Origin: Macrostomum lignano
Taxonomy: Eukaryota
Reading direction: 5' to 3'
Assembly: GCA_002269645.1 (NCBI GenBank)
Contig: NIVC01000882.1
Location: 186,001-250,000 of the forward strand
DNA: 64,000 nucleotides
The notes beneath the pieces are model-generated. The model made no database searches, was not told the origin of the DNA, and was given only the letters and a program-made list of their open reading frames with translations. How positions within the stretch are numbered: the stretch's first letter is position 1; the number at the start of each line of letters is the position of its first letter. Below are positions 1,591 through 50,866 of this stretch, one piece after another. The position numbers and the translations under genes were made by a program.

Positions 1591-15119
<13,529 letters not shown>

Positions 15120-15135
15120 ATGTGAGCAGTAAGTC

Positions 15136-15780
<645 letters not shown>

Positions 15781-16684: not shown

Positions 16685-16890
16685 GCTCTGCAACTGTGGG
16701 TGTAGCAGCTCTGCAACTGTGGGTGTAGCAGCTCTGCAACTGTAGGGTGTAGCAGCTCTGCAACTGTAGGTTTAGCAGCTCTGCAACTGTAGGGTGTAGC
16801 AGCTCTGCAACTGTAGGTGTAGCAGCTCTGCAACTGTAGGTGTAGCAGCTCTGCCATTGTGCAGATCTGGCAAAGCCCACAACTGTAGCT
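16685..16890. repeat. About 20-21-nt repeat (GTGTAGCAGCTCTGCAACTGTAG-like)
   Basis: Read directly, about 8 copies. Confidence 0.9.
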
Positions 16891-28257: not shown

Positions 28258-29486
28258 TAGCCATAGTAGCAAAACAAAATTCTCCTGGTTCCCTTTGCAT
28301 TTCCCCTACATGGGAACTATTTCCCTGCATTTTGTTTCTATCCCCCTTTATTTTTGTTTTACTTACAATGTATTTTAAACAATTTTTTTAATTAAGGTAT
28401 TATATAGTAGGGCCTAACAAAAGTGAATATAAGGATTGTGCTCTATATTAAGCTACAATTGTTGGATTCTTGCATGTCTACATCTAATTCCCCTCTCACT
28501 TTCATTTTACAATGCATTCTTAACAAATTCTTCATTTAGGATATCATATAACAAAAATTAATATAGGATTGAGCTCTATTAAGCTATAATTGTAGCATTT
28601 TTGCAATCATGTCTATGTCCCACTATTCTCATTTTCTCACTATTCTCACTATTTTTCATTGGGTATTGTATAACAAAATTGATGCAAAATGTGGATATTA
28701 TAAAACAAAAGGATGCCTAATATATATATATATTGTGCCATTATATGATACATATACTTATTTTGGATTTTAAAAAGGCCATGTGTTGCTAGTAGGGCCT
28801 ACATGCTTAAAAGAATCACATTAAAATTATAAAAAAATTGTACTTTCTTCAGTTTAAATAAGAAAATTTATGTAGTGTAAAGTTGTGAGTTCACAGTTTA
28901 ACATTTTTTGCAAAAATATTGTAAATACAAAAAAGGATAATACCTTTATAAAAATTGTTTATAGCTTTTTTATTCATATATATTTATATTGATTTGAGAG
29001 TAAGCTTAGGGACTAGGAGATTTCATACTCTACTTATTGCAAGCATACCCGGTGCACTATTATTTTGCCTTCTTCTTTTGGTGCATAGAAGTATATGCCA
29101 CTTCTAGTGCACATGTAATATGATTTTGACTAGGTCTATGGACAGGGTGGGCCCTAAGTAAAAACATATTTTTTTATATTTTATTAAAGATCTAGTCCCC
29201 AGCTTATGCCCAATGTTATAATGGCTTACAATAGGCCCTAATTATAATAAGATTATCTAAAAGCAGCTTATTTTTTAAATTTTTGAATAGGCTTAAAATA
29301 TAAAAATTAGAAAAATTCTTACAATTCTATTTCAAAATTCTTAGTTTGTGTTAGTTGGTCTTAATTCATTGCATACAACTATATATGATAAATAGTCAGC
29401 CATTGCAAACTGCTTACTATATTGTATGCAAATTATATTATATACCTTGGCTAGCACTCTATTGTATTCTTAGCCAATGACAGTTG

Positions 29487-29942
29487 CCATAGTCCAGAAG
29501 GTGGCCTGTACGCTGGAATTTTCCGGTGTATTTTTGCTTTCGCTGACAATCTTGGCATACACTTGGCGTATAGAATTTTCAGGTTCAACATGAAGTGTAC
29601 ACAGTTGGCATACAAAAATAGCCAAGTTCAAGGCTAATGTAATTGTGTAGTTAAATATCAACCAACGTAGAAGGCTCTTTAAAAATAATCGGAAACTAAA
29701 ATAGAAAATATGAACACAATCACGAGAAAATCAAAATTAAAACAGAATATCAGTTTTTAGCAAAAACAGCTGTTTTAAAGTTCAGTAAAAGTTTTGAGTT
29801 CCTAAAAATATATATTCATTAAAAATGGTATATAAACAATTTTAGTTTTGGCGTAAAATTTTTATTTTATTTTACATTGGCATAAAATTGAAAAAACATG
29901 AATTTTCATTCTGGCGTATACCTTCCATGATCTGGACTATGG
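29487..29942. mobile_element. Degenerate MITE-like element, copy 2 of the same family (TIR CCATAGTCCAGA)
   Basis: CCATAGTCCAGA at 29487 and its reverse complement TCTGGACTATGG ending at 29942; imperfect extension to about 33 nt; GGCRTA subterminal motifs. Confidence 0.55.
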
Positions 29943-30613
29943 GACAATTGCCTAAGTCCAACAATCTACATATAAGTCACAATAGTGTTGGCTATGGTAC
30001 CACCTATTGTTTGAGCTAGCTATATAAAGCCTAAGAAATATTCCTTGATTAGATGCTTGCTTGATAGGCCACTTTCATTTTGAACAAACCTAATAGAAAT
30101 AGAGTTACAGGCAAAAGACATCTATCATTTTGTCTATTATTACTGACCATTTAGGATTTGTTAGCATCCTTGATAATACACTGCTAAAGCTATTGTCCAA
30201 TAATTGATATAAGTTAATTTTGCACCTGTACCAAATAGTACCAAAATGCTTTAGTTTATTGAGATACCCTGCTAGTTCCACATCTCTAGAGGCTGCCTTT
30301 AATTGAAGTAAGGCTTGAAAGTTGCCTTCTATAGATTCTATGTCAACATCTGAGGATGGACAACATAGAGGCTTATCCTCACAATGACCACAAGTGGCAA
30401 TTCTACATCAAATCAAAGTCAAGACAATGCGTTACAGTCATTTCCTATTGTTGGCTATTTTAGCTATTAGTGCCTTGTCCTAGAGCTAGATGTTCAGCTA
30501 TTGACTACTCCTGTACTAACATAAAGTTAGTGGCTGTCTCCTTTGCAAACTTATGATAATGAGTTTTATTATGAGTCTTGACACCTTTGCTAGCCTTAAA
30601 AATATGTTTATAG

Positions 30614-31140
30614 TAGTGTTCTGCCATAAGGGGGTCCATACGCTATAGCCATAGCCGTAAGCAAAACTATGGCTTCTTCCAATTCTCTATATTCCGTAGC
30701 CATAGGGATCCCAATATTAGCATATTCCCATAGTTCCCTTTAGCCATAGCCATAGTTTTGACAAAAAGTCTAGGAAATAAAGTAATTTGAATCAGGAGCA
30801 TAACTTGGTACTTAAACAATTACAAATAAAGGTAGAAACTCAAACTAACACTCGATTGCCTTTTGTAAGATCACATTTCAATCATTTTTAAGTTTTTGAA
30901 TCTATGATGCAGTTTATACTAAATATCTCTGTTTTATTTTGCCTCTTTCTAATATTTATTAATTTTTTTAAATTTATAAATACAGCTGCAGTAATCTATG
31001 GAATGTGACTGCAATTACCATATTTCTGTAGTTGTAGCCATAAGAGCAGCTATCTACTGTAGGTGTATCTAGCTGCTGTAGGCAACTATTTTACCATATT
31101 TGCCATAGGATCCCATAGCCATAGCTATGGCGGAACACTA
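30614..31140. mobile_element. hAT-type non-autonomous element (MITE), 527 bp
   Basis: 15-bp TIR TAGTGTTC(T/C)GCCATA with 1 mismatch; perfect 8-bp TSD GTTTATAG at 30606-30613 and 31141-31148. An 8-bp TSD with a YARNG terminus is the hAT signature. Confidence 0.85.
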
Positions 31141-31358
31141 GTTTATAGTCCTTGAAAGCGGTATGAAATGGTACCTCATATATCAAAACTAGCCATGATT
31201 TGATTAGTATTGCATTTATTTTTATAGTGAATGGCAGCTATCTACATGTAACTCTTAATATTATTATAAAAAAAAACTTATCTTCTCATGACCTATACAA
31301 CAAAACCTGACACAATTGTTTATTAATGCCTACAATGAATTTTTAAGCTCTATTCAAA

Positions 31359-32575
31359 ATGAGTGAGGAGATGAATGAAATTCAAAAAGTATTCCAAGAT
31401 GAGGTGCACAAACAAATTGGCCTAATTGACAAACAGTACCTGCGCAAACTGCAAGCAGACACATTTCGCTGCTCAATTCGTTGCGTTGAAGATGTTCAGG
31501 TTAGTAGCTGGCAGATAAGTACTTCAATTATGTTTAGTATCTGGTTGTCTCATTTTAAGAAAGTTATTGCTGCTGTCAAGCAGTTCTTTAACATTTGACA
31601 CTATAGATTGACTAAAGATGGAATTGTGAATTGTTAATTTCAATGATAAATCCGAAATTAATATGTTGATAAATGGTAAATTATATATTTATTACCTATT
31701 CTAATTTTCTAACTCTTAATAATCCGATTGTCCTTAATATAATCCCGGTTCGTTAATCCTTAGTTGCTAGTCCCGAATTGCTAATTCTTAATAGCAAATC
31801 CCATTCTTTTTATCCTTAACTGCTAATCCCTATCCGTTAATCCTCAATTTCTAATCCCAATCATTTTATCCTTATTGCTAATCCTAATCCGTTAATCCTC
31901 AATTGCCAATCCCAATCGGTTTATCCTTAATCCTGAATAGCTAATCCCGATTGGTTAATCCTCCTGCTAATCCCAACCCGTTAATCCTCAATTGCTAATC
32001 CCGATTCGTTAATCCTTCATCGCTATTCCCAACATCGCTAATTCCCAATGCCTAATCCCAACATCGCTAAACCCCAATGCCTAATCCCAACATCGCTAAA
32101 CCCCAATGCCTAATCCCAACATCGCTAAACCCCAATGCCTAATCCCAACATCGCTAATCCCCAATGCCTAATCCCAACATCGCTAATCCCCAATGCCTAA
32201 TCCCAACATCGCTAATCCCCAATGCCTAATCCCAACATCGCTAATCCCCAACGCCTAATCCCCAAGGCCTATCCGAGCCCCCGCGACTCGCAGAGCTGCC
32301 TGGAGCGATGCGGCCAAGTTGTTCAACAGGCTGAGAAAGACATCGAAGTGGAGCTGTCGGGCTTTCAAAACCGAGTCCAGCGTTGCATGATGGACTGCGG
32401 CGACAGGGCGAAGGACGGCCTGCCGGCCTCGCCAAGCTCCGATCAGATCGCCAAAGCTCGAGTCGCTTCGGAGGCGTGCGCAGAGAAGTGCGTGCGCACC
32501 CATCTGGAGCAGCATCTGCCTACGGCGATGAAAAAAATTGGCGAACGACTCAAAGGCTACAAAGTGTCCTTGTAG
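31359..32575 (+). CDS. FAM136A: FAM136A (DUF842 twin-Cx3C protein), 149 aa; join(31359..31499,32267..32575)
   Basis: LRKLQADTFRCSIRC, CLERC, ELSGFQNRVQRCMMDCGDRAKD and CAEKCVRTH match the FAM136A pattern; phase-0 GT-AG intron. Confidence 0.92.
31730..32265. repeat. CTAAT-rich repeat resolving into a 29-mer (CCTAATCCCAACATCGCTAA[A/T]CCCCAATG) that runs into the FAM136A acceptor
   Basis: Read directly. Confidence 0.9.
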
Positions 32576-32809
32576 AAATGACTTGAACTTGGTCTTTGTC
32601 TATCCGTGCTTAAATGCGGTTCGAGTTAGAATAGCTTAATGATATTTTAACAACTATTTGTCTCCGACTATTGTTAGTTCAATTCAGACATCTGGGTTTG
32701 CTCGCAGCAATAATTATTCACTTTTAATTTTGTTAGTTAACTGTTCAAATAAATGAATTGATTTTGAAGTGTTCAACTCTTCTTTGGGATGATATGCTTT
32801 TCATGCAGT

Positions 32810-33440
32810 TGTCCCCATAGTGTATCTGGATTCCCCATAGTGTATCTGGATTCCCCATAGTGTATCTGAATTCCCCCATAGTGTAGCTGAATTCTCCCAT
32901 AGTGTAGCTGAATTCTCCCATAGTGTATCTGAATCCCCCATAGACAGTGTCTGAATTCCCCTATAGACAGTGTCTGAATCCTCCCATAGACATTTGAATC
33001 CCCCCATAGACACTGTCTGAATTCCCCCCATAGACAGTGTCTGAATTCCCCCAAAGACAGTGTCTGAATTCCCCCCATAGACTGTATCTGAATCCCCCCT
33101 ATAGACAGTGTCTGAATTCTCCCATAGACAGTATCTGAATTCCCCCATAGACAGTATCTGAATTCCCCTATATACAGTGTCTGAATTCTCCTATAGACAG
33201 TATTTTAATTCCCCCATAGTGTATCTGAATTCCCCATAGTGTATCCGAATTCACCCGTAGTGTATCTGAATCCCCCATAGACAGTGTCTGAATTCCCCTA
33301 TAGACAGTGTCTGAATTCCCCTATAGACAGTGTCTGAATTCCCCCATAGACAGTGTCTGAATTCCCCCATAGACAGTATCTGAATTCCCCCATAGACAGT
33401 ATCTGAATTCCCCCATGCTGTATCTGAGTTCCTTCATAGA
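32810..33440. repeat. About 20-22-nt repeat (CCCCATAGACAGTGTCTGAATT)n filling the FAM136A-INTS5 spacer
   Basis: Read directly. Confidence 0.93.
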
Positions 33441-33488
33441 CATTTAAATTGTCGGAATTCCCTGTCCCTCTGCAACAGCAGGCCAGCA

Positions 33489-36400
33489 ATGGCCGCACCG
33501 CAGGGCACAGAGCTGGGCCTGTTCATCGCGGCCAGCAGCGGCGGGGTCCAACTCAACTCGGAGGCTATGGCCGACCTGGCATTGAATCTCCTTCGCACAG
33601 TGCCGCAGGCGCGCCTAGCCGTGTTGGAGCACTTCAGCAGCGTGTTTAACGACTACGTGTGCAATAGCGCTTTGCACGCCAAATCAACCCAGTGCGAGCC
33701 GGTGCGCAAGACTCTAGCCAATCATATTAGCCGGCTTTGCTCGGCCTTGGATCAGCTGATGCCAACGGCTCCAACGGGATTCGCTAGCGACGTCTGCCGT
33801 TGGAGTTTGGACCTGTTGGCCAGCTTGTGCCTGAAGTACGCGCCGCATGTGATTGGCGAGGCGCATCAGATCCAGCGGAGCCGGGATGGTTGGTTGCTCA
33901 GACTGTTGTGTGGGATTATGGGACTATGGGATTATAGATTAGTGGCTGCGGGATTATTGAGGGATTATGGGCTGTGGAATTATTGAATTAGGGATTATGG
34001 GCTGTGGGATTATTGAATTAGGGATTATGGGCTGTGGGATTATTGAATTAGAGATTATGGGCTGTGGGATTATTGAATTAGGGATTATGGGCTGTGGGAT
34101 TATTGAATTAGGGATTATGGGCTGTGTTACGTTTAGACTGGGATTATTTACCGGCTTCCAATATACTAAAAATGATGGACTATAATTAGGACATATTTAT
34201 GAACTTAAAAATATTTACTGGAAAAGCAGCAGAGGATTAATAGTTTTAAGAAGAAACGAGTGCATGCATATTCGAAGAGGAAATTTTGATTGTAGTACAG
34301 CTCGTAACTGCTGATTAGTGTACGATATCCAAGATTCGAGCTCGGGACCTAATATATCCTCCTACCCCTCCCTTCGAATGCCTAAAAGCAGCGGACAGGC
34401 AGCCAATGGAGGAGCGCACCCGCCAATGGCTATCAGTTCCCGGCATCCCCGAGCTGCTGGGCATCGCTCAGCGATTCGGCGAGCGCGACGATTTCTCGGA
34501 CGGCCTTCTGGCCGGCCAGCCGCAGCTCGACTGGTTGCTGGCGGCGCCGGCCGCGACTGTCGGACTTTGCGGTCGTCGGAGCGCCTCGGCTTCGGCTGCC
34601 GTTCTGGACCGTCTGTTGGACCGCGCTATGCGGGACAGCTCGACTAGGTGAGTGAGCCTGCTCTGGTGGCTTTATGATGTGAGTGAGTTAGTTAGTTAGT
34701 TTGTTTGTTTGTTTGTTAGTTAGTTAGTTAGTTATTTAGTTTGTTAGTTTGATAGTTATTAAGTTAGTTATTTAGTTTGTTTGTTAGTTAGTTAGTTATT
34801 TAGTTAGTTATTTAGTTAGTTAGTTAGTTTGTTAGTTTGTTAGTTTGTTAGTTTGTTAGTTTGTTTGTTAGTTAGTTAGTCAGTTAGTTAGTTAGTTAGT
34901 TAATAGTAGGTTAGCCAGCCAGTCAGTCAGTCAGTCAGTCAGTCAGTCAGTCAGTCAGCCAGTCATGCCTGTCTCATATGCACCCCATTCGCAGAGACGG
35001 CTCCGGTCGGGTGCCGCCCAGCCTGCTGGATCTGCTGGCTCACCTGGCTGTCAACCGGCGTGGCGAACTCTGCGCCGCACTGCGCCGACTCTGCCGCAAA
35101 GCGGAGTCCGACCGGCGCCAGCTGGCCTCCTTCCTGCTGCACCTGGCCGCCTTTGGCTCGGCCGGGCTGTCCGGCCTGCTGGTCGAGCTGGCCGTCAGAT
35201 TCGCCTCGGCCAATCCAGAGCAGCTCGCTGGCGCCCTCGACGCGATGCTATCCGACAATCCCGACGCCGTGGTCGATGCTGCCGAGCGTCGACAGATGGC
35301 CGCCTCAGTGCTGCTTCGCTGCCAGGAGCCGTCCGGTCTCCGCATGCTGCGGCTTCTCCTTCAGGCGGTCCGACGGCGGCCAAACGCCGGCCAGTCGAAG
35401 ACCTGCGCCTTGTTGCTGGCCAGCGTGTCCTCATCCGCTCTGCGATCTCTGCCTGGCTCGCTGCAGCCGGGCCAGCAGGAGCCGCAGCAGGCGCTGCTTC
35501 GCCTGACTGACCGTCTGACAGCCAGGTGTCCGTATTCTGCCCGCCTGCTAGCTGCGGCCGCTGTCGCTGGCGGCCGGCCCGGCTGTCTGCAGCGGCTACT
35601 CCGGCCAGCTTTAACCGGACATCCGAAACTGCTGCTGCAGGCGCTGGATGTTATCGAACTGCACGATAGCGGTGAGGGCTGTTTGGAAGGATTAAGTTAT
35701 TGGCGTTAAAATATCCCATTAAGTTTCATGTTTCAGCCTTAAAATGCTCGTATTTGAACAACTTAACTATCGGGTGTCGGTTTAAAAGAACTACTTTTTG
35801 AGATATTTTTTGCCTTCTCAAAACTAGTTGCCTATCCTAAAATATCGGGCCTCGGCCTTCAAAAACTTTAAAAGTTGAAAGTGCCTTTGAGCTTTGAAAG
35901 TGCCAAAAAGGTCTTAATAAACCCCCCTTTGAAGAGATCCGCCTCTAAAAAAGCTTTCTTAAAAAATCGGCCTTCAAAATGCCTTCTGAAAAATCGGCTT
36001 TTGGAAATTGCTTCGAAAGAATCTGCCTTCATAAATTTCTTGAGAAAATCGGCCTTTAAAAGTGTCTTTTGAAAAAATAGGCCTTTAAAACTTTCTTGAA
36101 AAAAAAACCAGCCTTTAAAAGTTTCTTTTGAAGAAATCGGCCTTCAAAAATGCCTTTTTGAAGAAATCAGCCTTCAATACTGCATTTAAAAAATCGATAA
36201 ACACCTTATGAAAAAATTGGCTTTCAAAAGCAACGTTAAGATTTCCTTATCTTTGAAAATTTCTTGACCTCTTTAAGGACTCGTAAGGATTTAATTCGAA
36301 ATGATTTTTATAACAATCAAGTCAGCGGTAAGTCAATAAAACTGCCTTCTAGATGCCGCAGACGCCATTGCCGACTGCCTGCTTCAGCGGCTGCTGTCTG

Positions 36401-39400
36401 CTGCCGATTGGCGCCTTCGCCGGCACCTCCTACGCAGCGCCGGCGCTCTCCTAGCCGAAGAGGCCAGCCAGGAGCGGCGCCGATTGGCTGGCGCTCTCGG
36501 CCGCCAGCTGCCTCGCCTGCTGCGCCTGCTGGACGCCGGGCCGGGGCCGGCCGGTGTTGCCGACCTGCTGGCGCTGACTGGCCGGCTGGAGTTTCACAGA
36601 TCTGTGAGCGCTGCCGCTTTTACTGAACTGATTTGGGATTTAGGCGCTTTGCATAGGCTTGAAATTTCACACGTGTCTTGTTACTCACTTTTGCTAGCTT
36701 ATAACTTCACTCTGGCAGTTTCGAGTTGGAGAAGTTTTGATCTTGTGAAGTCTCGAGCTTGGGAAGTTTTGATCTTGTGAAGTTTCGAGTTTGAGAAGTT
36801 TTGATCTTGTGATGTTTTGAGCTTAAGAAGTTTTGATCTTGTGAAGTTTCGAGCTTGAGAAGTTTTGATCTTGTGAAGTTTCGAGTTTGAGAAGTTTTGA
36901 GCTTGTGAAGTTTCGAGCTTGAGAAGTTTTGATCTTGTGAAGTTTCGAGTTTGAGAAGTTTTGAGCTTGTGAAGTTTCGAGTTTGAGAAGTTTTGATCTT
37001 GTGAAGTTTCGAGTTTGAGAAGTTTTGAGCTTGTGAAGTTTCGAGTTTGAGAAGTTTTGAGCTTGTGAAGTTTCGAGTTTGAGAAGTTTTGATCTTGTGA
37101 AGTTTCGAGTTTGAGAAGTTTTGAGCTTGTGAAGTTTCGAGCTTGAGAAGTTTTGATCTTGTGAAGTTTCGAGCTTGAGAAGTTTTGATCTTGTGAAGTT
37201 TCGAGCTTGAGAAGTTTTGATCTTGTGAAGTTTCGAGTTTGAGAAGTTTTGAGCTTGTGAAGTTTCGAGTTTGAGAAGTTTTGATCTTGTGAAGTTTCGA
37301 GTTTGAGAAGTTTTGAGCTTGTGAAGTTTCGAGTTTGAGAAGTTTTGATCTTGTGAAGTTTCGAGTTTGAGAAGTTTTGAGCTTGTGAAGTTTCGAGCTT
37401 GAGAAGTTTTGATCTTGTGAAGTTTCGAGCTTGAGAAGTTTTGATCTTGTGAAGTTTCGAGCTTGAGAAGTTTTGATCTTGTGAAGTTTCGAGCTTGAGA
37501 AGTTTTGATCTTGTGAAGTTTCGAGCTTGAGAAGTTTTGATCTTGTGAAGTTTCGAGTTTGAGAAGTTTTGATCTTGTGAAGTTTCGAGCTTGAGAAGTT
37601 TTGATCTTGTGAAGTTTCGAGCTTGAGAAGTTTTGATCTTGTGAAGTTTCGAGCTTGAGAAGTTTTGATCTTGTGAAGTTTCGAGCTTGAGAAGTTTTGA
37701 TCTTGTGAAGTTTCGAGTTTGAGAAGTTTTGAGCTTGTGAAGTTTCGAGCTTGAGAAGTTTTGATCTTGTGAAGTTTCGAGTTTGAGAAGTTTTGAGCTT
37801 GTGAAGTTTCGAGTTTGAGAAGTTTTGATCTTGTGAAGTTTCGAGTTTGAGAAGTTTTGAGCTTGTGAAGTTTCGAGTTTGAGAAGTTTTGATCTTGTGA
37901 AGTTTCGAGTTTGAGAAGTTTTGAGCTTGTGAAGTTTCGAGCTTGAGAAGTTTTGATCTTGTGAAGTTTCGAGCTTGAGAAGTTTTGATCTTGTGAAGTT
38001 TCGAGCTTGAGAAGTTTTGATCTTGTGAAGTTTCGAGTTTGAGAAGTTTTGATCTTGTGAAGTTTCGAGCTTGAGAAGTTTTGATCTTGTGAAGTTTCGA
38101 GCTTGAGAAGTTTTGATCTTGTGAAGTTTCGAGTTTGAGAAGTTTTGATCTTGTGAAGTTTCGAGCTTGAGAAGTTTTGATCTTGTGAAGTTTCGAGTTT
38201 GAGAAGTTTTGAGCTTGTGAAGTTTCGAGTTTGAGAAGTTTTGATCTTGTATCCCATTTCGAGTTTGAGAAGTTTTGATCTTGTGAAATTTTGAGCTTGA
38301 GAAGTTTTGATCTTGTGAAGTCTCGAGCTTGAGAAATTTTGATCTTGTGAAGTCTCGAGCTTGAGAAGTTTTGATCTGTAACGTAACGTAACTGTAACGA
38401 TTCTATTTACAAGGCACCCTTAGCCGATTGCATAGCAGCCACAGGCGCTCTGTCCCGAGCTGTCGTTCACTGCCTGTTGGAATCTCCAGCCGATGAGACC
38501 GTCGGTCAAGTCGGCAGCCTGGCCGACCAGTTGGCCGACCAGCTGCTGGGCGCCGCCCGTCTCTATCCGCACTGCCGCGTCGCCGCCATCCGCCAGCTGG
38601 TCCAAGCCATGCTCTCGCCGTCGCCTCCGCCGCCTCCGCCTCCGTCGGCGTCGGTCGTAGCCGTCGACTCGCCGTCAACCGGCAGTGTGGCTTTAATCAC
38701 TTCGCGTCCGCCGAGTGTCGACGTCGCCGGCCAGCTGTTGAGACGGCGGGCACCGCTGGCCAATCGTTCTGCTGCCGCCGACGCTGCCAGCTCAATGTCG
38801 ATGACGTCGGCTGCCGAGATGCGCTGGTCAGCCGAGCAGGACCTGCTGGCTCTGCTGCACCGGCTGGTTATGGACGGCGACGCGGCCAAGTGTGGCGGCA
38901 GCGGCGGCTCCCAGGCCGCTGCCCGAGCCCTGGCCGTGGCCCTGTCTCAGGCCGCCTGTCCTGAGGGCGCCCTTCTGGCTATGGCCGCCACGCTAGACAA
39001 GGTGAGGCTGAGGTAGAGAGAGATGAGGCTGAAGTGGGGAGATGAGGCTGCGGTAAAGAGATGAGGCTGAAATGGGGAGATGAGGCTGAAGTGGGGAGAT
39101 GAGGCTGCGGTAAAGAGATGAGGCTGAAATGGGGAGATGAGGCTGAGATGGGAAGATGAGGCTGAGATGGGGAGATGAGACTGCGGTAAAGAGATAAGGC
39201 TGAGGTGGGGAGACGAGGCTGAGATGAGGAGATGAGGCTGCAGTGGGGAGATGAGGCTGAGATGGGAGATGAGGCTGAGATGGGAGATGAGGCTGAGGTG
39301 GGGAGATGAGGCTGAGATGAGGAGATGAGGCTGCAGTGGGGAGATGAGGCTGAGATGGGAGATGAGGCTAAGGTGGGGAGATGAGGCTGCGGTAAAGAGA

Positions 39401-40077
39401 TAAGGCTGAGGTGGGGAGATGAGGCTGAGATGCGGAGATGAGGCTGAGATGGGGTGATGAGGCTAAGATGAGGAAATGAGGCTGAGATGGGTAGATGAGG
39501 TTATACTAGGTAGAGAACAGGCTAAAGAAAGTCAGGTGATTTTCCACCCCAGGTGGGTCTGGAGTCCGGCACCCGAGTCCTGTCGCAGTTCCGCGCCCGC
39601 CCAGTCGCCCTGTGGGGCGCCCTGGAGCTCGCGGCCAGACTTGGCGAGCCGTGCGTGCTGGCCGAGGCCGCTCCGCTGCTGGCCGCCCTGCTCACCGGCC
39701 TGACCGTCCACTGGGGCTCCCGCCGGCAGCAGCCGCAGTCGTCGGCGTGCGCCGGCGCCGCCGCAGAGACCCGCCGGTTGATCGGCCTGCTCCGGGCCGG
39801 CCGCCTGCTGTCTCCTCCGCTGGACCGTCTGGACGCTATTGTCGACTGTCTGACACCGGCCGAGCTGCACCCGCTGCTCGAGGAGCTTCGCCGAGCCGTG
39901 CTGGAGGCGGCCGACTGGGCCAGACGGGAAGGACCGCAGGCGGTGGCAAAGGCCGGATTGGTCAGCGCCGAGCGGGCGGCGCCGCTGCTCAACCGGCTGC
40001 TGCATCGTCACGTGACCCGGCTGGCCCCGCTGTTTGGCGAGTTCTTTAGCCCGGGTGGCGGCTTGGCCTGTCACTGA
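33489..40077 (+). CDS. INTS5: Integrator complex subunit 5, 899 aa; join(33489..33888,34389..34647,34995..35671,36353..36603,38414..39001,39553..40077)
   Basis: LLRTVPQARLAVLEHFSSVF, WSLDLLASL and PQLDWLL match the recalled INTS5 N-terminus. LTPAELHPLL and LNRLLHRHVTRLAPLFGEF match the C-terminus. All five introns are GT-AG with matching phases (1,2,1,0,0); 2700 nt in total, open frame. Confidence 0.88.
33905..34130. repeat. 30-nt repeat (GGGATTATGGGCTGTGGGATTATTGAATTA)n, INTS5 intron 1
   Basis: Read directly. Confidence 0.92.
34685..34962. repeat. (GTTA/GTTT/GTCA)n microsatellite, INTS5 intron 2
   Basis: Read directly. Confidence 0.93.
36705..38378. repeat. 32-nt higher-order repeat (TTGTGAAGTTTCGAGC + TTGAGAAGTTTTGATC), INTS5 intron 4
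   Basis: Two related 16-mers alternate; 32-aa ORF period. Confidence 0.96.
39002..39500. repeat. About 19-nt repeat (GAGGCTGAGATGGGGAGAT)n, INTS5 intron 5
   Basis: Read directly. Confidence 0.9.
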
Positions 40078-42435
40078 TGATTTGATAATCTGACTGGTGA
40101 TTTAATAATCTGACTGGTGATTTGATAATCTGACTGGTGATTTAATAATCTGACTGATGATTTGATAATCTGACTGGTGATTTGATAATCTGACTGGTGA
40201 TTTAATAATCTGACTGGTGATTTGATAATCTGACTGGTGATTTGATAATCTGACTGGTGATTTGATAATCTGACTGATGATTTAATAATCTGACTGGTGA
40301 TTTGATAATCTGACTGGTGATTTGATAATCTGACTGATGATTTAATAATCTGACTGGTGATTTGATAATCTGACTGGTGATTTGATAATCTGACTGGTGA
40401 TTTGATAATCTGACTGGTGATTTGATAATCTGACTGATGATTTGATAATCTGACTGGTGATTTGATAATCTGACTGGTGATTTGATAATCTGACTGATGA
40501 TTTGATAATCTGACTGGTGATTTGATAATCTGACTGGTGATTTAATAATCTGACTGGTGATTTGATAATCTGACTGGTGATTTGATAATCTGACTGATGA
40601 TTTGATAATCTGACTGGTGATTTAATAATCTGACTGGTGATTTAATAATCTGACTGGTGATTTGATAATCTGACTGGTGATTTAATAATCTGACTGGTGA
40701 TTTGATAATCTGACTGGTGATTTGATAATCTGACTGGTGATTTAATAATCTGACTGGTGATTTGATAATCTGACTGGTGATTTGATAATCTGACTGGTGA
40801 TTTGATCATCTGACTGATGATTTGATCACTGATGATTTGATCGCTAATGATTTGATAATCTGACTGGTGATTTGATAATCTGACTGGTGATTTAATAATC
40901 TGACTTGTGATTTGATAATCTGACTGGTGATTTGATAATCTGACTGGTGATTTGATAATCTGACTGATGATTTGATAATCTGACTGATGATTTGATAATC
41001 TGACTGGTGATTTGATAATCTGACTGGTGATTTGATAATCTGACTGGTGATTTGATAATCTGACTGGTGATTTGATAATCTGACTGGTGATTTGATAATC
41101 TGACTGGTGATTTGATAATCTGACTGGTGATTTGATAATCTGACTGATGATTTGATAATCTGACTGGTGATTTGATAATCTGACTGACTGATGATTTGAT
41201 AATCTGACTGATGATTGGATAATCTGACTGACTGATGATTTGATAATCTGACTGATGATTGGATAATCTGACTGACTGATGATTTGATAATCTGACTGAT
41301 AATTTGATAATCTGACTGACTGATGATTTGATAATCTGACTGATGATTTGATAATCTGACTGACTGATGATTTGATAATCTGACTGATGATTTGATAATC
41401 TGACTGACTGATGATTTGATAATCTGACTGACTGATGATTTGATAATCTGACTGACTGATGATTGGATAATCTGACTGATGATTTGATAATCTGACTGAC
41501 TGATGATTTGATAATCTGACTGATGATTTGATAATCTGACTGACTGATGATTTGATAATCTGACTGATGATTTGATAATCTGACTGACTGATGATTTGAT
41601 AATCTGACTGATGATTTGATAATCTGACTGATGATTTGATAATCTGACTGACTGATGATTTGATAATCTGACTGATGATTTGATAATCTGACTGACTGAT
41701 GATTTGATAATCTGACTGATGATTTGATAATCTGACTGACTGATGATTTGATAATCTGACTGATGATTTGATAATCTGACTGACTGATGATTTGATAATC
41801 TGACTGACTGATGATTTGATAATCTGACTGACTGATGATTGGATAATCTGACTGATGATTTGATAATCTGACTGACTGATGATTTGATAATCTGACTGAT
41901 GATTGGATAATCTGACTGACTGATGATTTGATAATCTGACTGATGATTTGATAATCTGACTGACTGATGATTTGATAATCTGACTGATGATTTGATAATC
42001 TGACTGACTGATGATTTGATAATCTGACTGATGATTTGATAATCTGACTGATGATTGGATAATCTGACTGACTGATGATTTGATAATCTGACTGATGATT
42101 TGATCACTGATGATTTGATCACTGATGATTTGATCACTGATGATTTGATAATCTGACTGGTGATTTGATAATCTGACTGATGATTTGATAATCTGACTGA
42201 TGATTTGATAATCTGACTGATGATTTGATAATCTGACTGATGATTTGATAATCTGACTGATGATTTAATAATCTGACTGATGATTTGATAATCTGACTGA
42301 TGATTTGATAATCTGACTGATGATTTGATAATCTGACTGATGATTTGATAATCTGACTGACTGATGATTTGATAATCTGACTGATGATTTGATAATCTGA
42401 CAGACTGATGATTTGATAATCTGACTGATGATCTG
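40075..42435. repeat. 20/24-nt minisatellite (TG[A/G]TGATTTGATAATCTGAC[TGAC])n starting at the INTS5 stop codon
   Basis: Read directly; three subdomains of variants. Confidence 0.97.
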
Positions 42436-42806
42436 ACGGCTTCAAATTCAAATTCGGCTTGTTAGCTATTATTAATTTTTGGCAAGCATTTTTCATCAGT
42501 TCATTAACAGTTAACTTATTTTCTGTTAGTAGCAGCATGTGTATGTATGAGTTAGTGTTGGTTGCCGATTGAAATATTTCGTGTACTAATTATATAATAG
42601 ATATTACACAGCCAAGTTCCTTGTTGCTTTTAAAAACGCAGTTCAGCCAATTAAAAATATTCATCGCGCGCTTTTTTCACTCCAACTTTAAATTTTAGTT
42701 GCAAAATACAAAAAAATGCCTACTGACAAGTAGGATAGAGCGACTATCATTGCTTTTCTCGGTTAGATAGCTAAATAGTGTGTATAAATTTTTTCAGCGG
42801 CATATC

Positions 42807-45213
42807 ATGAAACGCCGCCGCTCGCCAGCCGCCGATGCGGCGACTCCGTCAGCCTCGTCGGATCCGATGTTCAAAACGCTGGAATTCGCTCGCAGTCTGA
42901 GGACTATACGGGATTATTTTAATTTAATAGACAAATGCGGCGAAGGCGCTTTCTCGGCCGTGTTCAGAGCCCGGCCGCTGACTGGCGGGGACCGTTGCTT
43001 AGCGGTTAAGGTCATCAGCCAGTGCTGCGACTTGCAGCGCACCTGTACGGAGATTCTTCTGTTGAAGGCCTTAAAAGGCTCGCCGAATGTCATCAGCCTG
43101 GTGTCTGCTGTGCGTGAGGCTGAAACTGTGCTGCTGGTGATGGACTACGTTGAGCACAGGCCGTTTGTGGAGTTCTATAGACAGCTGCAACCTGATCAGG
43201 TGCGTTGGCTGCAATTGTGTGCTATTATCCCCTTTTTAGATTCCTCTTATTCTTAGAATCGACCTGTTTCTTAGAATCGTCGTTCAGTTCTTAGAATCTT
43301 CGCTTCTTATGAGTAGAAACGGCTTTTTTTCTAATAATTTTATTGCTTTTTGGAATCGGCTCATTTCTTAGAATCTTTGCTTTTTAAAATAGGCTTGTAT
43401 TTCTAGGAATTTTATTGCTTCTTAGAATCGGCTGCTTAGAATATTATTGTTTCTTAAAGTCGGCTCATTTCTTAGAATCTTATTGTTTGTTAGAATCGGC
43501 TCATTTCTTAGAATCTTTGCTTTTTAAAATAGGCTTGTATTTCTAGGAATTTTATTGCTTCTTAGAATCGGCTGCTTAGAATATTATTGTTTCTTAAAGT
43601 CGGCTCATTTCTTAGAATCTTATTGTTTGTTAGAATCGGCTCATTTCTTAGAATCTTTGCTTTTTAAAATAGGCTTGATTTCTAGGAATTTTATTGCTTC
43701 TTAGAATCGGCTGCTTAGAACATTATTGTTTCGTAGAATAGGCTTATTTCGGAGAATTTTACTGTTTTTTAAAATTGGTTTATTTCTTACAATCTTATTG
43801 TTTCTAAGAATCGATTCCTTTTTGAGAATCTTGTTTCTTAGAATCGGCTCATTTTTAGAATCTTATTGTTTCTAAGAATCGATTCCTTTTTGAGAATCTT
43901 GTTTCTTAGAATCGGCTCATTTTTAGAATCTTATTGTTTCTAAGAATCGATTCCTTTTTGAGAATCTTGTTTCTTAGAATCGGCTCATTTTTAGAATCTT
44001 ATTGTTTCTAAGAATCGATTCCTTTTTGAGAATCTTGTTTCTTAGAATCGGCTCATTTTTAGAATCTTATTGTTTCTAAGAATCGATTCCTTTTTGAGAA
44101 TCTTGTTTCTTAGAATCGGCTCATTTTTAGAATCTTATTGTTTCTAAGAATCGATTCCTTTTTGAGAATCTTGTTTCTTAGAATCGGCTCATTTTTAGAA
44201 TCTTATTGTTTCTAAGAATCGATTCCTTTTTGAGAATCTTGTTTCTTAGAATCGGCTCATTTTTAGAATCTTATTGTTTCTAAGAATCGATTCCTTTTTG
44301 AGAATCTTGTTTCTTAGAATCGGCTCATTTCTTAGAATCTTATTGCTTCTCCTTTCTTAGAACAGATCTGTTTCTCAGAACTGTTTTTTCCTAGAATCAG
44401 CACCAGCCCAACCAGTGCCTGAGCTGACAGCCATCCCGGCACCATCTGCAGGTGCAGCACTACATGCGCTGCCTGCTGGACGCCCTCAGCCGAGTGCACT
44501 CAATGGGCGTAGTGCATCGCGACGTGAAGCCCAGCAACGCGCTGTACAATCCGGCCACCGGCCAGTTTGCTCTGGCCGACTTTGGTCTGGCCCACCTGGT
44601 GCAGCAGCAGCCGCAACGGCCGAGACCGGCCGCCCGGCCAGCCGCTGTTGGTTCGGCCGCGGTTTTCCCGTCCAATAAGTCCGCGGCCGCCTCGTGCCGC
44701 TGCGCCTCCGGGCTCGTGTGCGGCCCCTGCCTGTCCAAGCGGCCGATCCGAGCGCCACGCGGCGGCACCAACGGCTACAGGCCGCCGGAAGTGCTGCTGC
44801 AGGCCGACAGCCAGGACTGTCGGGTGGACACCTGGGCGGCCGGCTGCATTCTGGCCGCTTTCCTGTCCGGCCGGCAGCCGTTTCTCTGGTGCCGCTCGGA
44901 CACGGAATGCCTGTACCTGCTGTGCTGCCTGTTCGGCCTGAACTCCATGCGATCCGCTGCCGCCGCTGTCGGGCGCGAGCTGCGCGTGCTGCCAGTCGCC
45001 TCGGAGACTCTGCCAGAAGCCGAGTTCCCCTGTCGGCGAGACCGGCTGTCCAGCGTCTGTCGGTTGATACGCGGAACCGAGGCCGGCAGCTCCGATGGTC
45101 CGTCGTCGTCAGTGTTTGACCTGCTCAGCGGATTGCTGCAAGCCGATCCGGCGAAGCGGCTGACAGCTGCCGACGCTCTCAAGCATCCGTACTTTGCTTC
45201 GGCTAAGCGCTAA
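42807..45213 (+). CDS. CDC7: Cell division cycle 7 kinase, 384 aa; join(42807..43199,44452..45213)
   Basis: KCGEGAFSAV G-loop, HRDVKPSN and DFGLA are present. The Cys-rich insert CRC..CGPC is followed by APRGGTNGYRPPE (CDC7 has APRAGTPGFRAPE), and LSGRQPF follows. Phase-0 GT-AG intron. Confidence 0.9.
43250..44400. repeat. AATC...AG subunit repeat, organised into a 68-nt higher-order repeat at about 43790-44340, CDC7 intron
   Basis: Subunits of 18+18+15+17 nt; period 68 confirmed (43861 vs 43929). Confidence 0.92.
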
Positions 45214-45269
45214 TCCGACTGGGCTTTGCTTTGTTAACCGTAGTAGCCGGATTGGGGGTGTTGGTAACT

Positions 45270-45900
45270 GGGATTGTTGACCTTAGCAACCGGGTTGTTG
45301 ACCTTATCAACCAGGTTGTTGACCTTAGCAACTGGGTTGTTGACCTTATCAACTGGTGTTGGCCTTAGCAATTGGGTTGTTTACCATGCCAACTGGGTTG
45401 TTAACCTTAGCAACCAGGTTGTTGATCTAATCAACCAGGTTGTTGACCTTAGCAACTGGGTCGTTGACCTTAGCAACCGGGTTGTTGACCTTAGCAACCA
45501 GGTTGTTGACCTTAGCAACCGGATTGTTCACCATGCCAACTGGGTTGTTGACCTTAGAAACCAGGTTGTTGACCTTAACAGAGCAGCGGGTTCTTGACCT
45601 TAGCAACCAGGTTGTTGATCTTAGCAACTGGGTTTTTGACCTTAGTAACTGGGTTTTTTTCACCATGTCAACTGTGTTTTTGACCTTAACAGAGCAGCGG
45701 GTTGTTGACCTGGCAACCAGGTTGTTGACCTTAGCAACCAGGTTGTTTTCCTTAGCAACTGGATCGTTGACCTTAGCAACTAGGTTGTAGACATTAGCAT
45801 AACAGCGGGGTTGTTTCATACAATATAAGATATCGACCTTAGCAACCAAATTTGTTATCTTAAGAAACCATGCTGTTAGCCTTAGTAACAGAATTTTTGC
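45270..45900. repeat. 21-nt repeat (TTGTTGACCTTAGCAACCAGG)n
   Basis: Read directly. Confidence 0.92.
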
Positions 45901-46199
45901 TCTGTTAAAAACCAGTTTTTGTGCTATTATTGACCTGTGCATTTCCTATGTTAGTGAGCATTTCTGTATAATCTATGCATATACGAGCTACCAATGCCCA
46001 ACGTATTTGAATGTTTACAGCCAATGCCAGGAATCTTGACCGTCTGGCTGCACTATTTATTAATTTTTAATGCTGTTATAATATTTTCGCGTCAACTATA
46101 TAATTTTTGTGCAACTAATGGCAGTGCATTTCTTAGAATTTTATCTAAAGTACAAGTATTTTTCATATTAAAAATGCTTTTATGCCTGTCGAATATTAG

Positions 46200-47440
46200 C
46201 AGGCTGAGATATCCTTACTTGGGATTGGAAATAGGTTCGGATGTTCTCACGACTGGGTTATTCTCACCTTGAGATTGGAGATAGTTGAGATATTCTCACC
46301 ATGAGATTAGAGATCGGCTGGGATATTCTCACCTTGATATCGGCTAAGATTTTCTCACCTTGATATCGGCTGGGATTTTCTCACCTTGATATCGGCTGGG
46401 ATTTTCTCACCTTGATATCGGCTGGGATTTTCTCACCTTGATATCGGCTGGGATTTTCTCACCTTGATATCGGCTGGGATATTCTCACATTGAAATTGGA
46501 GATCGGCTAGGATATTCTCACCTTGAGATTGGGGATCGGCTGGGATATTCTCACCTTGAGATTGGGGATCGGCTGGGATATTCTCACCTTGAGATTGGGG
46601 ATCGGCTGGGATATTCTCACCTTGAGATTGGGGATCGGCTGGGATATTCTCACCTTGAGATTGGGGATCGGCTGGGATATTCTCACCTTGAGATTGGGGA
46701 TCAGCTGGGATATTCTCACCTTGAGATTAGGGATCGGCTGGGATATTCTCACCTTGAGATTGGGGATCGGCTGGGATATTCTCACCTTGAGATTGGGGAT
46801 CGGCTGGGATATTCTCACCTTGAGATTGGGGATCGGCTGGGATATTCTCACCTTGAAATTGGGGATCGGCTGGGATATTCTCACCTTGATATCGGCTGGG
46901 ATATTCTCACCTTGAGATTGGAGATCGGCTGGGATATTCTCACCTTGAGATTGGGGATCGGCTGGGATATTCTCACCTTGATATCGGCTGGGATATTCTC
47001 ACCTTGAGATTGGGGATCGGCTGGGATATTCTCACCTTGATATCGGCTGGGATATTCTCACCTTGAGATTGGGGATCGGCTGGGATATTCTCACCTTGAG
47101 ATTGGGGATCGGCTGGGATATTCTCACCTTGAGATTGGGGATCGGCTGGGATATTCTCACCTTGAGATTGGGGATCGGCTGGGATATTCTCACCTTGAGA
47201 TTGGGGATCGGCTGGGATATTCTCACCTTGAGATTGGGGATCGGCTGGGATATTCTCACCTTGAGATTGGGGATCGGCTGGGATATTCTCACCTTGAGAT
47301 TGGGGATCGGCTGGGATATTCTCACCTTGATATCGGCTGGGATATTCTCACCTTGAGATTGGAGATCAGCTGGATTATTCTCACCTTGAGATAGTAGATC
47401 GGATGGGGTATTTCCACCTTGAGATTGATATTCTCACCTT
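46200..47440. repeat. 33-nt minisatellite (GATATTCTCACCTTGAGATTGGGGATCGGCTGG)n with 22-nt deletion variants
   Basis: Read directly; 11-aa period. Confidence 0.96.
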
Positions 47441-47544
47441 TAGACCAGCGATCTAAAACTTCTATAATTTCAACCTATTAGATGGTGCTAGACTTCGCTA
47501 TATCAACTCTCTTGCTTGTTATCACAATTCCAGCAGGAACCAGC

Positions 47545-47913
47545 ATGCCAAAGGTGTACAAAACCACTCACCAGTTCGATGGCGACCTGCCCGCACTTGT
47601 TCACCTGAGCGTGCTGGAATTCTCTGACCGCCTGCTCCTGTCGGTGTCCGACTCGGGCAAGCTGGGCTGCTTCTTTGTGCCGGCGCCCGGCCTCCAGGCC
47701 GATGACGCGGAGGCTCGGTTCGGCGCGCCAAAATCGCCGGCCACCTCGCGGGCAGCGCGTCTCCTTGGCGACAGTCTTCGCCGAGGCGCCGACGCCGGGA
47801 GTAGCGCATCAACGGCGCCTGTCGTGAGCCTGTGCCTCGCGAACGAGAGCCGCAGTCGGGTCCAGCTGCTCTGCGAATTGGTGGCTCAATTTCGCACCTG
47901 GCCGCAGGCGTGA
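47545..47913 (+). CDS. PSMG3: Proteasome assembly chaperone 3-like, 122 aa, single exon
   Basis: VHLSVLEFSDRLLLSVSDSGKLG resembles PAC3 QVVCTAFSSHILVVVTQFGKMG. The C-terminus VSLCLANESRSRVQLLCELVAQFRTW resembles LLAVAVKDKSMEGLKALREVIRVCQVW. Length matches; comparison is from memory. Confidence 0.75.
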   Translation: MPKVYKTTHQFDGDLPALVHLSVLEFSDRLLLSVSDSGKLGCFFVPAPGLQADDAEARFGAPKSPATSRAARLLGDSLRRGADAGSSASTAPVVSLCLANESRSRVQLLCELVAQFRTWPQA

Positions 47914-49152: not shown

Positions 49153-50866
49153 TCACTGCAAGCCGAACGATACAGACGACATTCGAACTGTCGGGGCAGC
49201 GGCCGAGATCCTTCTCAGCTGAATCGGGGCCTTCGACTCCTTGTCCAGCTTCGCTGAGGCTGACCCGCTCCGGGACTGTCGCGGGCCGAGCGGCTGTCGC
49301 GGCTTGCCGAACGCGTCCCGAACGCCGCCCTCCCGCGCCACGTTGGACTGATTCTCGCCGTCTTCGCGAGCCCCGACGCCCAGCAGCAGCATGTCGAGCA
49401 GGCCGATGATGTTCAGCTTGCGTTGCAGCGGAAAATTCTTCGTCGACAAGAAGATGCCGCGCCGTTCGCGTTTAGTCATGTGCCAGGGAGCGTACAGGAT
49501 GCGCCCGGTCTCGCGATCGCGGAGCGGCTCCGTGGGCGACTTGAGGTCGTAGACTTCGCCATACTGGTGGTGTGTGATGCCGACTCGCTGGTAGCCGTAG
49601 ACCAGCGGCTTGTTGTCCGGCACGAACTCGTTGCACTGTAGGCGGGCCTTGGCGGTGTCGCGGTACTCCTCCAGGTTCACGCTGCCCGGCAGGATGCCCT
49701 CGATGAGCCGCTTGGCCTGGCGGGTGGCGCCGTGAAATGCGTGGGATTGTAAAGTGCATGTAGGCTGCTGTAGTACGAGTTTCGTTAGAGGGGATCGGCA
49801 TCGGCAAGCTAACAAAGTTTCGCCGGATTTAGCATTTAGTGAAGTGAAATAGCATTTGCATTTATGGAATTAATAATTTTGCTTCGGGGCAACTAAATAT
49901 AGCGCCTGCTAAACTGAAATGAGTGCCTGCGGCGCTAAAATGAGTGCCTCCGGCGCCAAAATGAGTGCCTGCGGCGCTAAAATGAGTGCCTCCAACGCCA
50001 AAATGAGTGCCTCCGGCGCCAAAATGAGTGCCTGCGGCGCTAAAATGAGTGCCTGCGGAGCCAAAATGAGTGCCTACGGAGCCAAAATGAGTGCCTGCGG
50101 AGCCAAAATGAGTGCCTGCGGCGCCAAAATAAGTGCCTGCGGCGCCAAAATGAGTGCCTGCGGTGCCAAAATGAGTGCCTCCGGCGCCAAAATGAGTGCC
50201 TCCGGCGCCAAAATGAGTGCCTGCGGCGCCAAAATGAGTGCCTGCGGAGCCAAAATGAGTGCCTGCGGCGCCAAAATGAGTGCCTGCGGAGCCAAAATGA
50301 GTGCCTGCGGAGCCAAAATGAGTGCCTGCGGCGCCAAAATAAGTGCCTGCGGCGCCAAAATGAGTGCCTGCGGTGCCAAAATATGCGCTGACAACACCGA
50401 TTCTCAAAAATAATATACATGTACACGTAGAATTCTTGGCTTTGTCCCCCAACCACAAAATCCATTGCGACGCCTCTGTGAAGCGTTGCCGCTCTCAAAT
50501 AACCCTCCAAGTTTCTCCAACAAACTTGTGAGGATAAAACAGCTAACATGGATTTAAAGTTCAGCTACATGGATTTGAGTTTATGGCATGCTAATCAATA
50601 TTCCACACCTGCGCATGTTTAGCCCGAGTCGGCGCCACCACCATGAGCAGCTGGTACTTGATCCAGGTGTCGCCAGCGCCGCGCCTGTACAGTGACCGAG
50701 TGTTCATGACCAGCTGGCAGCTGCACTTGGCCTCAATCATGTTCTTGTTAGCCGGCAGCAGCAGCGGGGTCAGCAGCTCGCTAACGGCCAGCAGCAGGTA
50801 CTTTCTAGTGGACTTGCCAGCCCCGATCGCGTTGAATGAGACGGTGAAGCCGCGGTATTTGGACAT
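49153..50866 (-). CDS. Uncharacterised protein, 289 aa; complement(join(49153..49764,50609..50866))
   Basis: Two GC3-rich open exons joined by a phase-0 GT-AG intron (KHAQ|PTCT); acceptor 13 nt before the ATG; no family recognised. Confidence 0.7.
49915..50385. repeat. 21-nt minisatellite (AAAATGAGTGCCTGCGGCGCC)n in the intron of the uncharacterised gene
   Basis: Read directly. Confidence 0.96.

Follow-up and report, generated by a model that had tools for sequence, protein, structure and literature searches.

The locus described here raises the question of whether four adjacent genes are expressed from one precursor that is resolved by spliced-leader (SL) trans-splicing, as an earlier note on the same DNA had proposed. 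The window analyzed, a 64-kb stretch to which all coordinates refer, is Macrostomum lignano scaffold NIVC01000882.1:186001-250000 (assembly Mlig_3_7). FAM136A, INTS5, CDC7, and a PSMG3-like gene follow one another head to tail on the + strand, and in the deposited annotation these are the only genes (the last as a 125-aa product) on that strand between positions 21350 and 49152. No gene is annotated between the four on either strand, the other open reading frames of the region are encoded by repeats only, and a 10-kb block without annotated genes lies upstream of the cluster. The co-oriented cluster is closed by a convergent gene on the - strand (49153-50866, 273 aa). Rfam and tRNA searches gave no matches, and neither an SL gene nor an SL k-mer was found within the 64-kb window. 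A second genomic copy, on contig NIVC01002800.1, preserves all four genes, their order, and their unique flanks, with arrays of different length.

The co-oriented layout and the identities of FAM136A, INTS5, and CDC7 are as the earlier note had them; the name given to the fourth gene is not confirmed. The FAM136A (DUF842) CDS (31359-32575, +) consists of exon 1 (31359-31499), an intron filled with a 28/29-mer satellite (31500-32266), and exon 2 (32267-32575). Its spliced product matches Pfam DUF842 (PF05811, E=9.5e-31, 106.7 bits relative to a gathering cutoff of 25.1) and is 100% identical to NCBI BOX15_Mlig022310g2. The INTS5 CDS (33489-40077, +; deposited model 33474-40077, 904 aa) is divided into at least six exons, with a separate satellite in each intron and a stop codon that falls inside the first unit of the following array. 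This gene is identified by Pfam INTS5_N (E=2.7e-19, 70 bits vs a cutoff of 27); the match to INTS5_C is weak (25.3 bits, slightly below the cutoff of 27), and precomputed domain matches on the 904-aa product are consistent with this result. As a separate observation, the INTS5 model of the second copy is frame-shifted, and the INTS5 protein of an older assembly is frame-scrambled. The CDC7 CDS (42807-45213, +) comprises exon 1 (42807-43199), an intron with a 36/68-mer satellite (43200-44451), and exon 2 (44452-45213), and its 382-aa product is an exact match to NCBI BOX15_Mlig020213g2. The best PDB matches of this product are to human CDC7 (6ya7 and 4f99, E=4.8e-56 to 4.6e-49), with yeast Cdc7 at 1e-40; the next-best PDB family, CK2 (~5e-31), is matched over the N-lobe only. 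In Pfam, the kinase domain is interrupted by an insert.

The fourth gene (47545-47913, +) is a single exon encoding 122 aa, with AATAAA hexamers downstream at 48170 and 48340, and is a candidate PSMG3/PAC3-like gene. Its product has no Pfam match even at E<=10 and no PDB sequence match, and a search of 1.8 billion representatives gave no informative homologue. A BLASTP comparison with human PAC3 gives E=0.17 only, in a colinear alignment of two proteins that are both 122 aa long; the PAC3 query was checked against 2z5e (E=1.8e-74). The AlphaFold model of the product has a pLDDT of 49.6, at which a fold search is meaningless.

The spacers had been described as mostly repeat, and tandem repeat indeed accounts for 71% of spacer 1 (903 nt), 87% of spacer 2 (2720 nt), and 74% of spacer 3 (2320 nt). 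In TRF output on the + strand, spacer 1 contains a 23-mer satellite, TCTGAATTCCCCCATAGACAGTG, in ~26 copies (32800-33442; the corresponding array of the second copy spans ~1.3 kb), and spacer 2 contains a 20-mer, ACTGGTGATTTGATAATCTG, in ~114 copies (40073-42436). Spacer 3 is composed of a 21-mer satellite of ~25 copies (45266-45799), a unique middle segment (45800-46252) with an ATTAAA at 46167 that is a candidate CDC7 poly(A) signal, and a 33/66/99-mer satellite of ~38 copies (46253-47427). The unique sequence left before each acceptor, in line with the earlier description, is 36 nt for INTS5, 106 nt for the PSMG3-like gene, and 361 nt for CDC7. This last, AT-rich stretch (42437-42797, +) includes an ATTAAA at 42650, a TATAAAT at 42784-42790, and an acceptor, ttttttCAG, ending at 42797. 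The AATAAA that had been reported for FAM136A is present at 32748-32753 (+), 173 nt 3' of the stop codon, and the mRNA length that it implies is compatible with a published 725-nt transcript. By chance alone, an AT-rich spacer would be expected to hold about one canonical poly(A) hexamer.

Operons resolved by SL trans-splicing are a published feature of this species, repeat-inflated intercistronic spacers included, so the general premise of the earlier note holds. In M. lignano, ~30% of genes are trans-spliced to one 35-nt SL and ~15% are assigned to operons in which repeats inflate the spacers; with repeats subtracted, operonic intergenic distances are most frequent near 100 bp, and a threshold of 1 kb is applied (Ustyantsev & Berezikov 2021, PMC8629364). 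The four genes here are adjacent, on the same strand, without opposite-strand interruption, and at repeat-adjusted distances of <1 kb, which is the published operon criterion. The adjusted stop-to-acceptor gaps are 260 nt (325 nt by strict TRF coordinates), 361 nt, and 611 nt, and in the published distribution, which is bimodal, all three belong to the operonic mode; counted from the hexamer to the acceptor and minus repeats, the gaps are 82, 142, and 186 nt. SL addition to the first gene, optional in the published definition, is found for FAM136A, which has been listed as trans-spliced in published tables since 2016: its 725-nt transcript, RNA1509_6418, is flagged {TRANSSPLICED} in the source/supplementary data of a 2016 eLife paper. 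For INTS5 and CDC7, no entry was found in the published supplementary tables that were searched.

Each of the four ATGs is preceded at 9-11 nt by an AG, as had been claimed, with AG ends at 31347, 33478, 42797, and 47533 and exon lengths of 11, 10, 9, and 11 nt before ATGs 31359, 33489, 42807, and 47545. The proposed acceptors, all on the + strand, are tttttaAG/ctc for FAM136A (31346-31347), caacAG/c for INTS5 (33477-33478), the CAG described above for CDC7, and ttCCAG/c for the PSMG3-like gene (47532-47533). The description of these AGs as pyrimidine-preceded is right for the tract and fails at position -3, where three of the four are CAG and FAM136A has AAG. Across the window, 21-22% of ATGs have an AG that ends 9-11 nt before them; four of four would then arise by chance with a probability of ~0.002, a value to be read in light of a range picked post hoc and of several nearby AGs each at INTS5 and the PSMG3-like gene. 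The published trans-acceptor motif, [T/C]TNCAG, is present at CDC7 (TTTCAG) and at the PSMG3-like gene (TTCCAG), with a chance expectation of ~0.5-1% of ATGs; FAM136A (TTTAAG) and INTS5 (CAACAG) depart from it.

The deposited transcripts of all four genes start within 16 nt of the proposed acceptor and lack an upstream 5'UTR exon. In the annotation of this assembly (Wudarski et al. 2017, PMC5730564), the pipeline yields AG-exact boundaries where an SL peak exists. The deposited 5' end of FAM136A is 31348, directly after the proposed AG, and its 5'-partial CDS begins with the first full codon at 31350. When 10 N-terminal variants of the PSMG3-like product were compared with the protein collection, only the variant starting at 47536 was present; a transcript from 47534 would have its first full codon there, and the deposited 5' end coincides with the proposed AG. 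The deposited 5' ends of INTS5 (33472-33474) and CDC7 (42811-42813, with the deposited CDS starting at 42813) lie 5-14 nt from the proposed AGs and have no AG directly before them, and both are the same in the two genomic copies. The earlier claim of an SL operon is partly supported: it agrees with the organism, the published criterion, the trans-splicing of FAM136A, and the 5' end of the PSMG3-like gene, and it does not agree with the 5' ends of INTS5 and CDC7.

Taken together, we judge it somewhat probable that the locus is an M. lignano SL operon of the known type, at least partly one precursor, with SL added at the four AGs. In this proposal, RNA from the four genes would arise, wholly or partly, as a common precursor whose promoter lies upstream of FAM136A. 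This polycistronic RNA would be cut by 3' cleavage and polyadenylation at the hexamers at 32748, 42650, 46167, and 48170/48340, and, coupled with this cleavage, the one 35-nt SL would be joined on at the AG 9-11 nt before each ATG, which predicts SL addition to INTS5 and CDC7 as well. The kb-long satellites would have entered short intercistronic regions as neutral insertions; arrays of this kind also fill all introns of these genes.

A TATA-like element stands 27-31 nt upstream of the deposited 5' end of INTS5, and likewise of CDC7 (ATTTAAAT at 33442-33449 and TATAAAT at 42784-42790, with TATAAA occurring at only 4.2e-4 per nt on the + strand), which makes internal promoters a live rival. Under this alternative, only some neighbours would be co-transcribed (for example FAM136A-INTS5 and/or CDC7-PSMG3-like), and INTS5 and/or CDC7 would also, or instead, use their own TATA-like promoters beside the satellites, with capped starts at 33472-33474 and 42811-42813. 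We regard such a hybrid or partial operon as possible but on balance unlikely. It accounts for 5' ends that are not AG-adjacent and are identical in both copies, and the 361 nt of unique DNA before CDC7 could house a promoter; however, 5' ends from RNA-seq and Trinity are ragged, and end-to-end mapping of SL-bearing reads may move them by a few nt. Moreover, a start at 42811 would lose the ATG at 42807, the very point at which GC content rises abruptly, from 0.30 to 0.63, an INTS5 promoter would have only ~30 nt of non-satellite DNA, and CDC7 has a perfect TTTCAG 9 nt before its ATG, at which the SL AUG is computed to be in frame. The transcriptional-unit prefixes of FAM136A (Mlig022310) and CDC7 (Mlig020213) differ, which speaks for separate units and against an operon, but this difference is uninformative about the precursor because, in the published account, such units are often split in repeat-rich intergenic regions. 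A more specific form, in which INTS5 and CDC7 start at the deposited 5' ends from TATA-like promoters at the satellite edges, promoter or enhancer activity comes from the arrays or from the degenerate units at their ends, and each gene yields both an SL-capped mRNA from the polycistronic precursor and an m7G-capped mRNA from the internal start, is highly doubtful.

Four independent units that merely share orientation are a rather improbable explanation. Each gene would then be driven by its own promoter, located in a repeat or in the unique part of a spacer, and trans-splicing would only remove a private outron. Such an arrangement would be in keeping with published figures, by which ~60% of the trans-spliced genes in M. 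lignano lie outside operons, with the unique DNA in spacer 2 (361 nt) and spacer 3 (453 + 106 nt), with an annotation that did not merge the genes into one unit, and with the complete "stringent neoblast" list, on which FAM136A alone of the four appears. Against it, only ~82 nt of non-repeat DNA separates the FAM136A poly(A) signal from the INTS5 acceptor, the three adjusted gaps are all operonic in size, and very short genomic 5'UTRs end near an AG in all four genes. Finally, mis-assembly of the gene order or satellite spacers, or mis-annotation, which a very repeat-rich genome and the disrupted INTS5 frames noted above might suggest, is extremely improbable given that the independent contigs NIVC01000882.1 and NIVC01002800.1 agree in genes, order, and unique flanks and differ in array lengths.

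Read as an SL operon, the locus is an ordinary example of a published pattern and not a discovery, and the earlier reading restates a known genome feature. SL operons with repeat-inflated spacers were described genome-wide on the same assembly in 2021, and the present case, from the same species, does not differ from them in kind: adjacent conserved genes on one strand, a candidate acceptor near each ATG, repeat-dominated spacers, repeat-adjusted gaps in the range of ~100-600 nt and under the 1-kb threshold, and four genes within the published 2-9. The locus thus matters little beyond annotation. It is a tidy worked example in an animal tractable to transgenesis, and it may serve as a test bed for read-through by RNA polymerase II of 2-kb satellites between cistrons and for internal promoters beside satellites.

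As in C. elegans, where SL2-resolved operons have intercistronic regions of ~100 nt, unrelated housekeeping genes share one orientation, and the upstream poly(A) signal lies ~100-200 nt from the next acceptor, here after repeat subtraction; hybrid operons with internal promoters also occur in C. elegans. Unlike C. elegans with its specialised SL2, M. lignano is reported to use one 35-nt SL for all sites, and the physical spacers at this locus are 0.9-2.7 kb owing to satellites. Resolution of polycistrons by a single SL class is shared with tunicates (Ciona and Oikopleura) and with Schistosoma, for which few operons are reported; in contrast to this locus, intercistronic regions of tunicates are nearly absent. 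We know of no tunicate or Schistosoma operon with kb-long satellite spacers. The flatworm SL ends in AUG, and that of M. lignano does likewise. As a point against the proposed operon, this AUG is computed to open, after trans-splicing, overlapping uORFs of 57 codons on INTS5 and 25 codons on the PSMG3-like gene.

The four co-oriented + strand genes FAM136A, INTS5, CDC7 and PSMG3-like are, by a modest preference, best explained as a spliced-leader (SL)-resolved operon of the published Macrostomum lignano type that is at least partly polycistronic. Co-transcription of at least one neighbouring pair is likely, and a single precursor common to all four genes is somewhat doubtful, at best evenly balanced.

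The genes lie on contig NIVC01000882.1 (the window spans its positions 186001-250000) of assembly GCA_002269645.1 (Mlig_3_7), from a free-living flatworm whose genome is very rich in repeats and partly duplicated. All coordinates given for them in the earlier note proved correct on re-checking. In the deposited annotation, these are the only + strand genes between 21350 and 49152, the 10 kb upstream of FAM136A holds zero protein genes, and a convergent gene occupies 49153-50866 on the − strand. Three of the four original names are borne out: FAM136A matches Pfam DUF842 (E=9.5e-31), INTS5 matches INTS5_N (E=2.7e-19; the INTS5_C match is weak), and the top PDB matches of CDC7 are human CDC7 (E=4.8e-56), with CK2 far behind. 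The spliced FAM136A product matches NCBI 'BOX15_Mlig022310g2, partial [Macrostomum lignano]' with 100% identity. The PSMG3 label of the fourth gene, in contrast, was not confirmed. Its 122-aa product has zero matches in Pfam, even at E<=10, or among PDB sequences, a scan of 1.8 billion proteins returned zero useful homologues, and an exact protein look-up of the 122- and 143-aa forms found none. The single-sequence AlphaFold model is of low confidence and its Foldseek search was uninformative; pairwise BLASTP against human PAC3 gave a weak (E=0.17), colinear alignment between proteins of equal length. The protein clusters of the locus genes contain only genome-derived members, from NCBI and UniRef. 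The deposited INTS5 protein is absent from the homologue search results, and 143 GT-AG splice models are compatible with its 904-aa length. P0005, a M. lignano UniRef protein (A0A1I8FP..) titled 'Fe_hyd_lg_C domain-containing protein', is actually INTS5; it was rejected as a paralogue, being the same gene, frame-scrambled, from an older indel-rich assembly.

The proposed trans-splice acceptors are AGs ending at 31347, 33478, 42797 and 47533, followed by ATGs at 31359, 33489, 42807 and 47545, all present in the sequence. The acceptor trinucleotide is CAG in three genes and AAG at FAM136A. About 21% of ATGs in the window have an AG at a matching distance; this spacing is weak evidence by itself, and the AG-to-ATG distance range was set post hoc. 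The published M. lignano trans-acceptor motif, [T/C]TNCAG, is found at CDC7 and PSMG3-like, against a background of about 1% of window ATGs. For FAM136A, the source data of Grudniewska et al. 2016 give the 725-nt transcript RNA1509_6418 the flag {TRANSSPLICED}, and this transcript is also on the stringent neoblast list of that study. FAM136A is the only one of the four genes found in the supplementary tables of four papers, and the gene identifiers of the locus are absent from the indexed main texts.

The deposited CDSs are 5'-partial, so that each CDS begins with the first complete codon that the annotated transcript contains. The FAM136A start at 31350 fits a transcript beginning at 31348, immediately after the AG. 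For PSMG3-like, the one of ten N-terminal variants tried that is in the protein collection starts at 47536, which fits a transcript start at 47534, immediately after the TTCCAG acceptor. SL addition to FAM136A is published, and its deposited 5' end agrees with the proposed AG; the deposited 5' end of PSMG3-like is compatible with SL addition, and those of INTS5 and CDC7 do not coincide with the proposed AGs. The INTS5 start (33474) has no AG directly before it and precedes the proposed one by 4-6 nt, and that of CDC7 (42813) lies 14 nt downstream of its AG, beyond the ATG; both are the same in the two genomic copies of the locus. As the annotation pipeline places gene boundaries exactly at the AG wherever an SL peak is present, these two ends are probably ragged RNA-seq or Trinity ends, worsened by end-to-end mapping of SL-bearing reads, or else are real transcription starts.

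If they are real starts, internal promoters would precede INTS5 and/or CDC7. Such a hybrid is unlikely overall and is nonetheless the main rival. It is kept as a serious one because each of the deposited ends, neither next to an AG, has a TATA-like element 27-31 nt upstream of it (ATTTAAAT at 33442-49 for INTS5, TATAAAT at 42784-90 for CDC7), and TATAAA occurs on the + strand at only 4.2e-4 per nt; the spacing could reflect internal promoters or coincidence. The earlier note had raised a promoter of its own for CDC7, and that suggestion is retained here, but a start at 42811 would lose the ATG at 42807. GC content rises from 0.30 to 0.63 exactly at this ATG, a perfect TTTCAG acceptor lies 9 nt before it, and the AUG that ends the M. 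lignano SL would be in frame with it if joined at 42798, adding MRHI. Joined at 31348, the SL AUG would open a 5-codon uORF overlapping the FAM136A AUG (AUGA); at 33479 and 47534 it would open overlapping uORFs of 57 codons (INTS5) and 25 codons (PSMG3-like).

The spacers agree with the operon reading. As described previously, they are mostly tandem repeat (71%, 87% and 74% of 903, 2720 and 2320 nt), with little unique DNA before the acceptors of INTS5 (36 nt) and PSMG3-like (106 nt), compared with 361 nt for CDC7. After repeat subtraction, the stop-to-acceptor distances are 260, 361 and 611 nt. A single canonical poly(A) hexamer lies in the unique DNA of each spacer, at 32748 (the AATAAA noted earlier for FAM136A), 42650 and 46167. 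The repeat-adjusted distances from these to the next acceptor, 82, 142 and 186 nt, fall squarely within the operonic mode; the hexamers themselves are consistency rather than proof, since chance gives about one per AT-rich spacer. Satellites are not peculiar to the spacers, because every intron of the four genes carries its own as well.

Between 31500 and 47427, a different private tandem array is seen in every intron and spacer, with units of 4, 19, 20, 21, 23, 28/29, 30, 32, 33 and 36/68 nt. The 23-mer unit of spacer 1 (32800-33478) includes an acceptor-like CCCCCATAG, and the 36-nt 'unique' stretch leading up to the INTS5 acceptor resembles a degenerate 23-mer unit (TCGGAATTCCC...). Within 40073-40100, the INTS5 stop codon (TGA, 40075-77) sits in the first unit of a 2.36-kb 20-mer array, and the INTS5 3'UTR therefore starts within satellite. 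Past this array, the ATTAAA at 42650 is the sole canonical poly(A) hexamer before CDC7.

Operons of this kind are documented in M. lignano. SL-containing and poly(A) reads were mapped to this assembly, about 7% of assembled transcripts were multi-gene precursors, and 'transcriptional units' were split into genes at SL/poly(A) peaks (Wudarski et al. 2017, PMC5730564). An estimated 30% of genes are trans-spliced to a single 35-nt SL and 15% belong to operons, 2-9 genes in size, the spacers of which are inflated by repeats; the repeat-subtracted distances that separate trans-spliced genes show a bimodal distribution whose main peak is near 100 bp, and 1 kb served as the operon threshold (Ustyantsev & Berezikov 2021, PMC8629364). 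The satellite-spacer operon of the earlier note agrees with this genome-wide feature but is not new, and amounts to its re-derivation from sequence: this type of system and its mechanism were already published, as was the SL assignment of one gene out of the four, FAM136A.

Four independent transcription units are a quite improbable alternative. The transcriptional-unit prefixes of FAM136A and CDC7 differ (Mlig022310 vs Mlig020213), and the two genes were therefore not assembled as a single unit; this difference is uninformative, because RNA-seq-derived units are prone to splitting in repeat-rich spacers, as the authors warn (PMC8629364). An assembly artefact is essentially excluded.

A near-identical copy of the locus on NIVC01002800.1 retains the gene order and unique flanks and differs in array lengths (spacer 1 array, 643 nt here vs about 1300 nt), compatible with array turnover as neutral insertions. 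Identity between copies is 99.7-100% across 38.4-48.6 kb, equal in coding and non-coding DNA, and footprinting between copies this alike is powerless. Identity steps up from about 94-97% in non-coding DNA at 29-36 kb to >=99.7% at 38.4-48.6 kb, pointing to recent gene conversion or to a mosaic duplication with its boundary inside INTS5. The second-copy INTS5 (L001, part of that copy, 13064-17587) is annotated at only 592 aa, with exon 5 read in another frame to an early stop, and may reflect a pseudogene, alternative splicing or an assembly indel. Given this frame change, it was rejected as evidence of units breaking in satellites.

Scans of the window returned no Rfam families or tRNAs, and no SL RNA gene lies within it. 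Upstream of FAM136A, an AT-rich block without annotated genes (24000-31300, GC about 0.30-0.34) contains a 369-aa ORF (24672-25778) with no Pfam match. The left end of the window (1567-5579, + strand) is occupied by a protocadherin-like gene, which encodes several cadherin domains, and an ArfGAP gene lies close to its right end (59454-60398, − strand).
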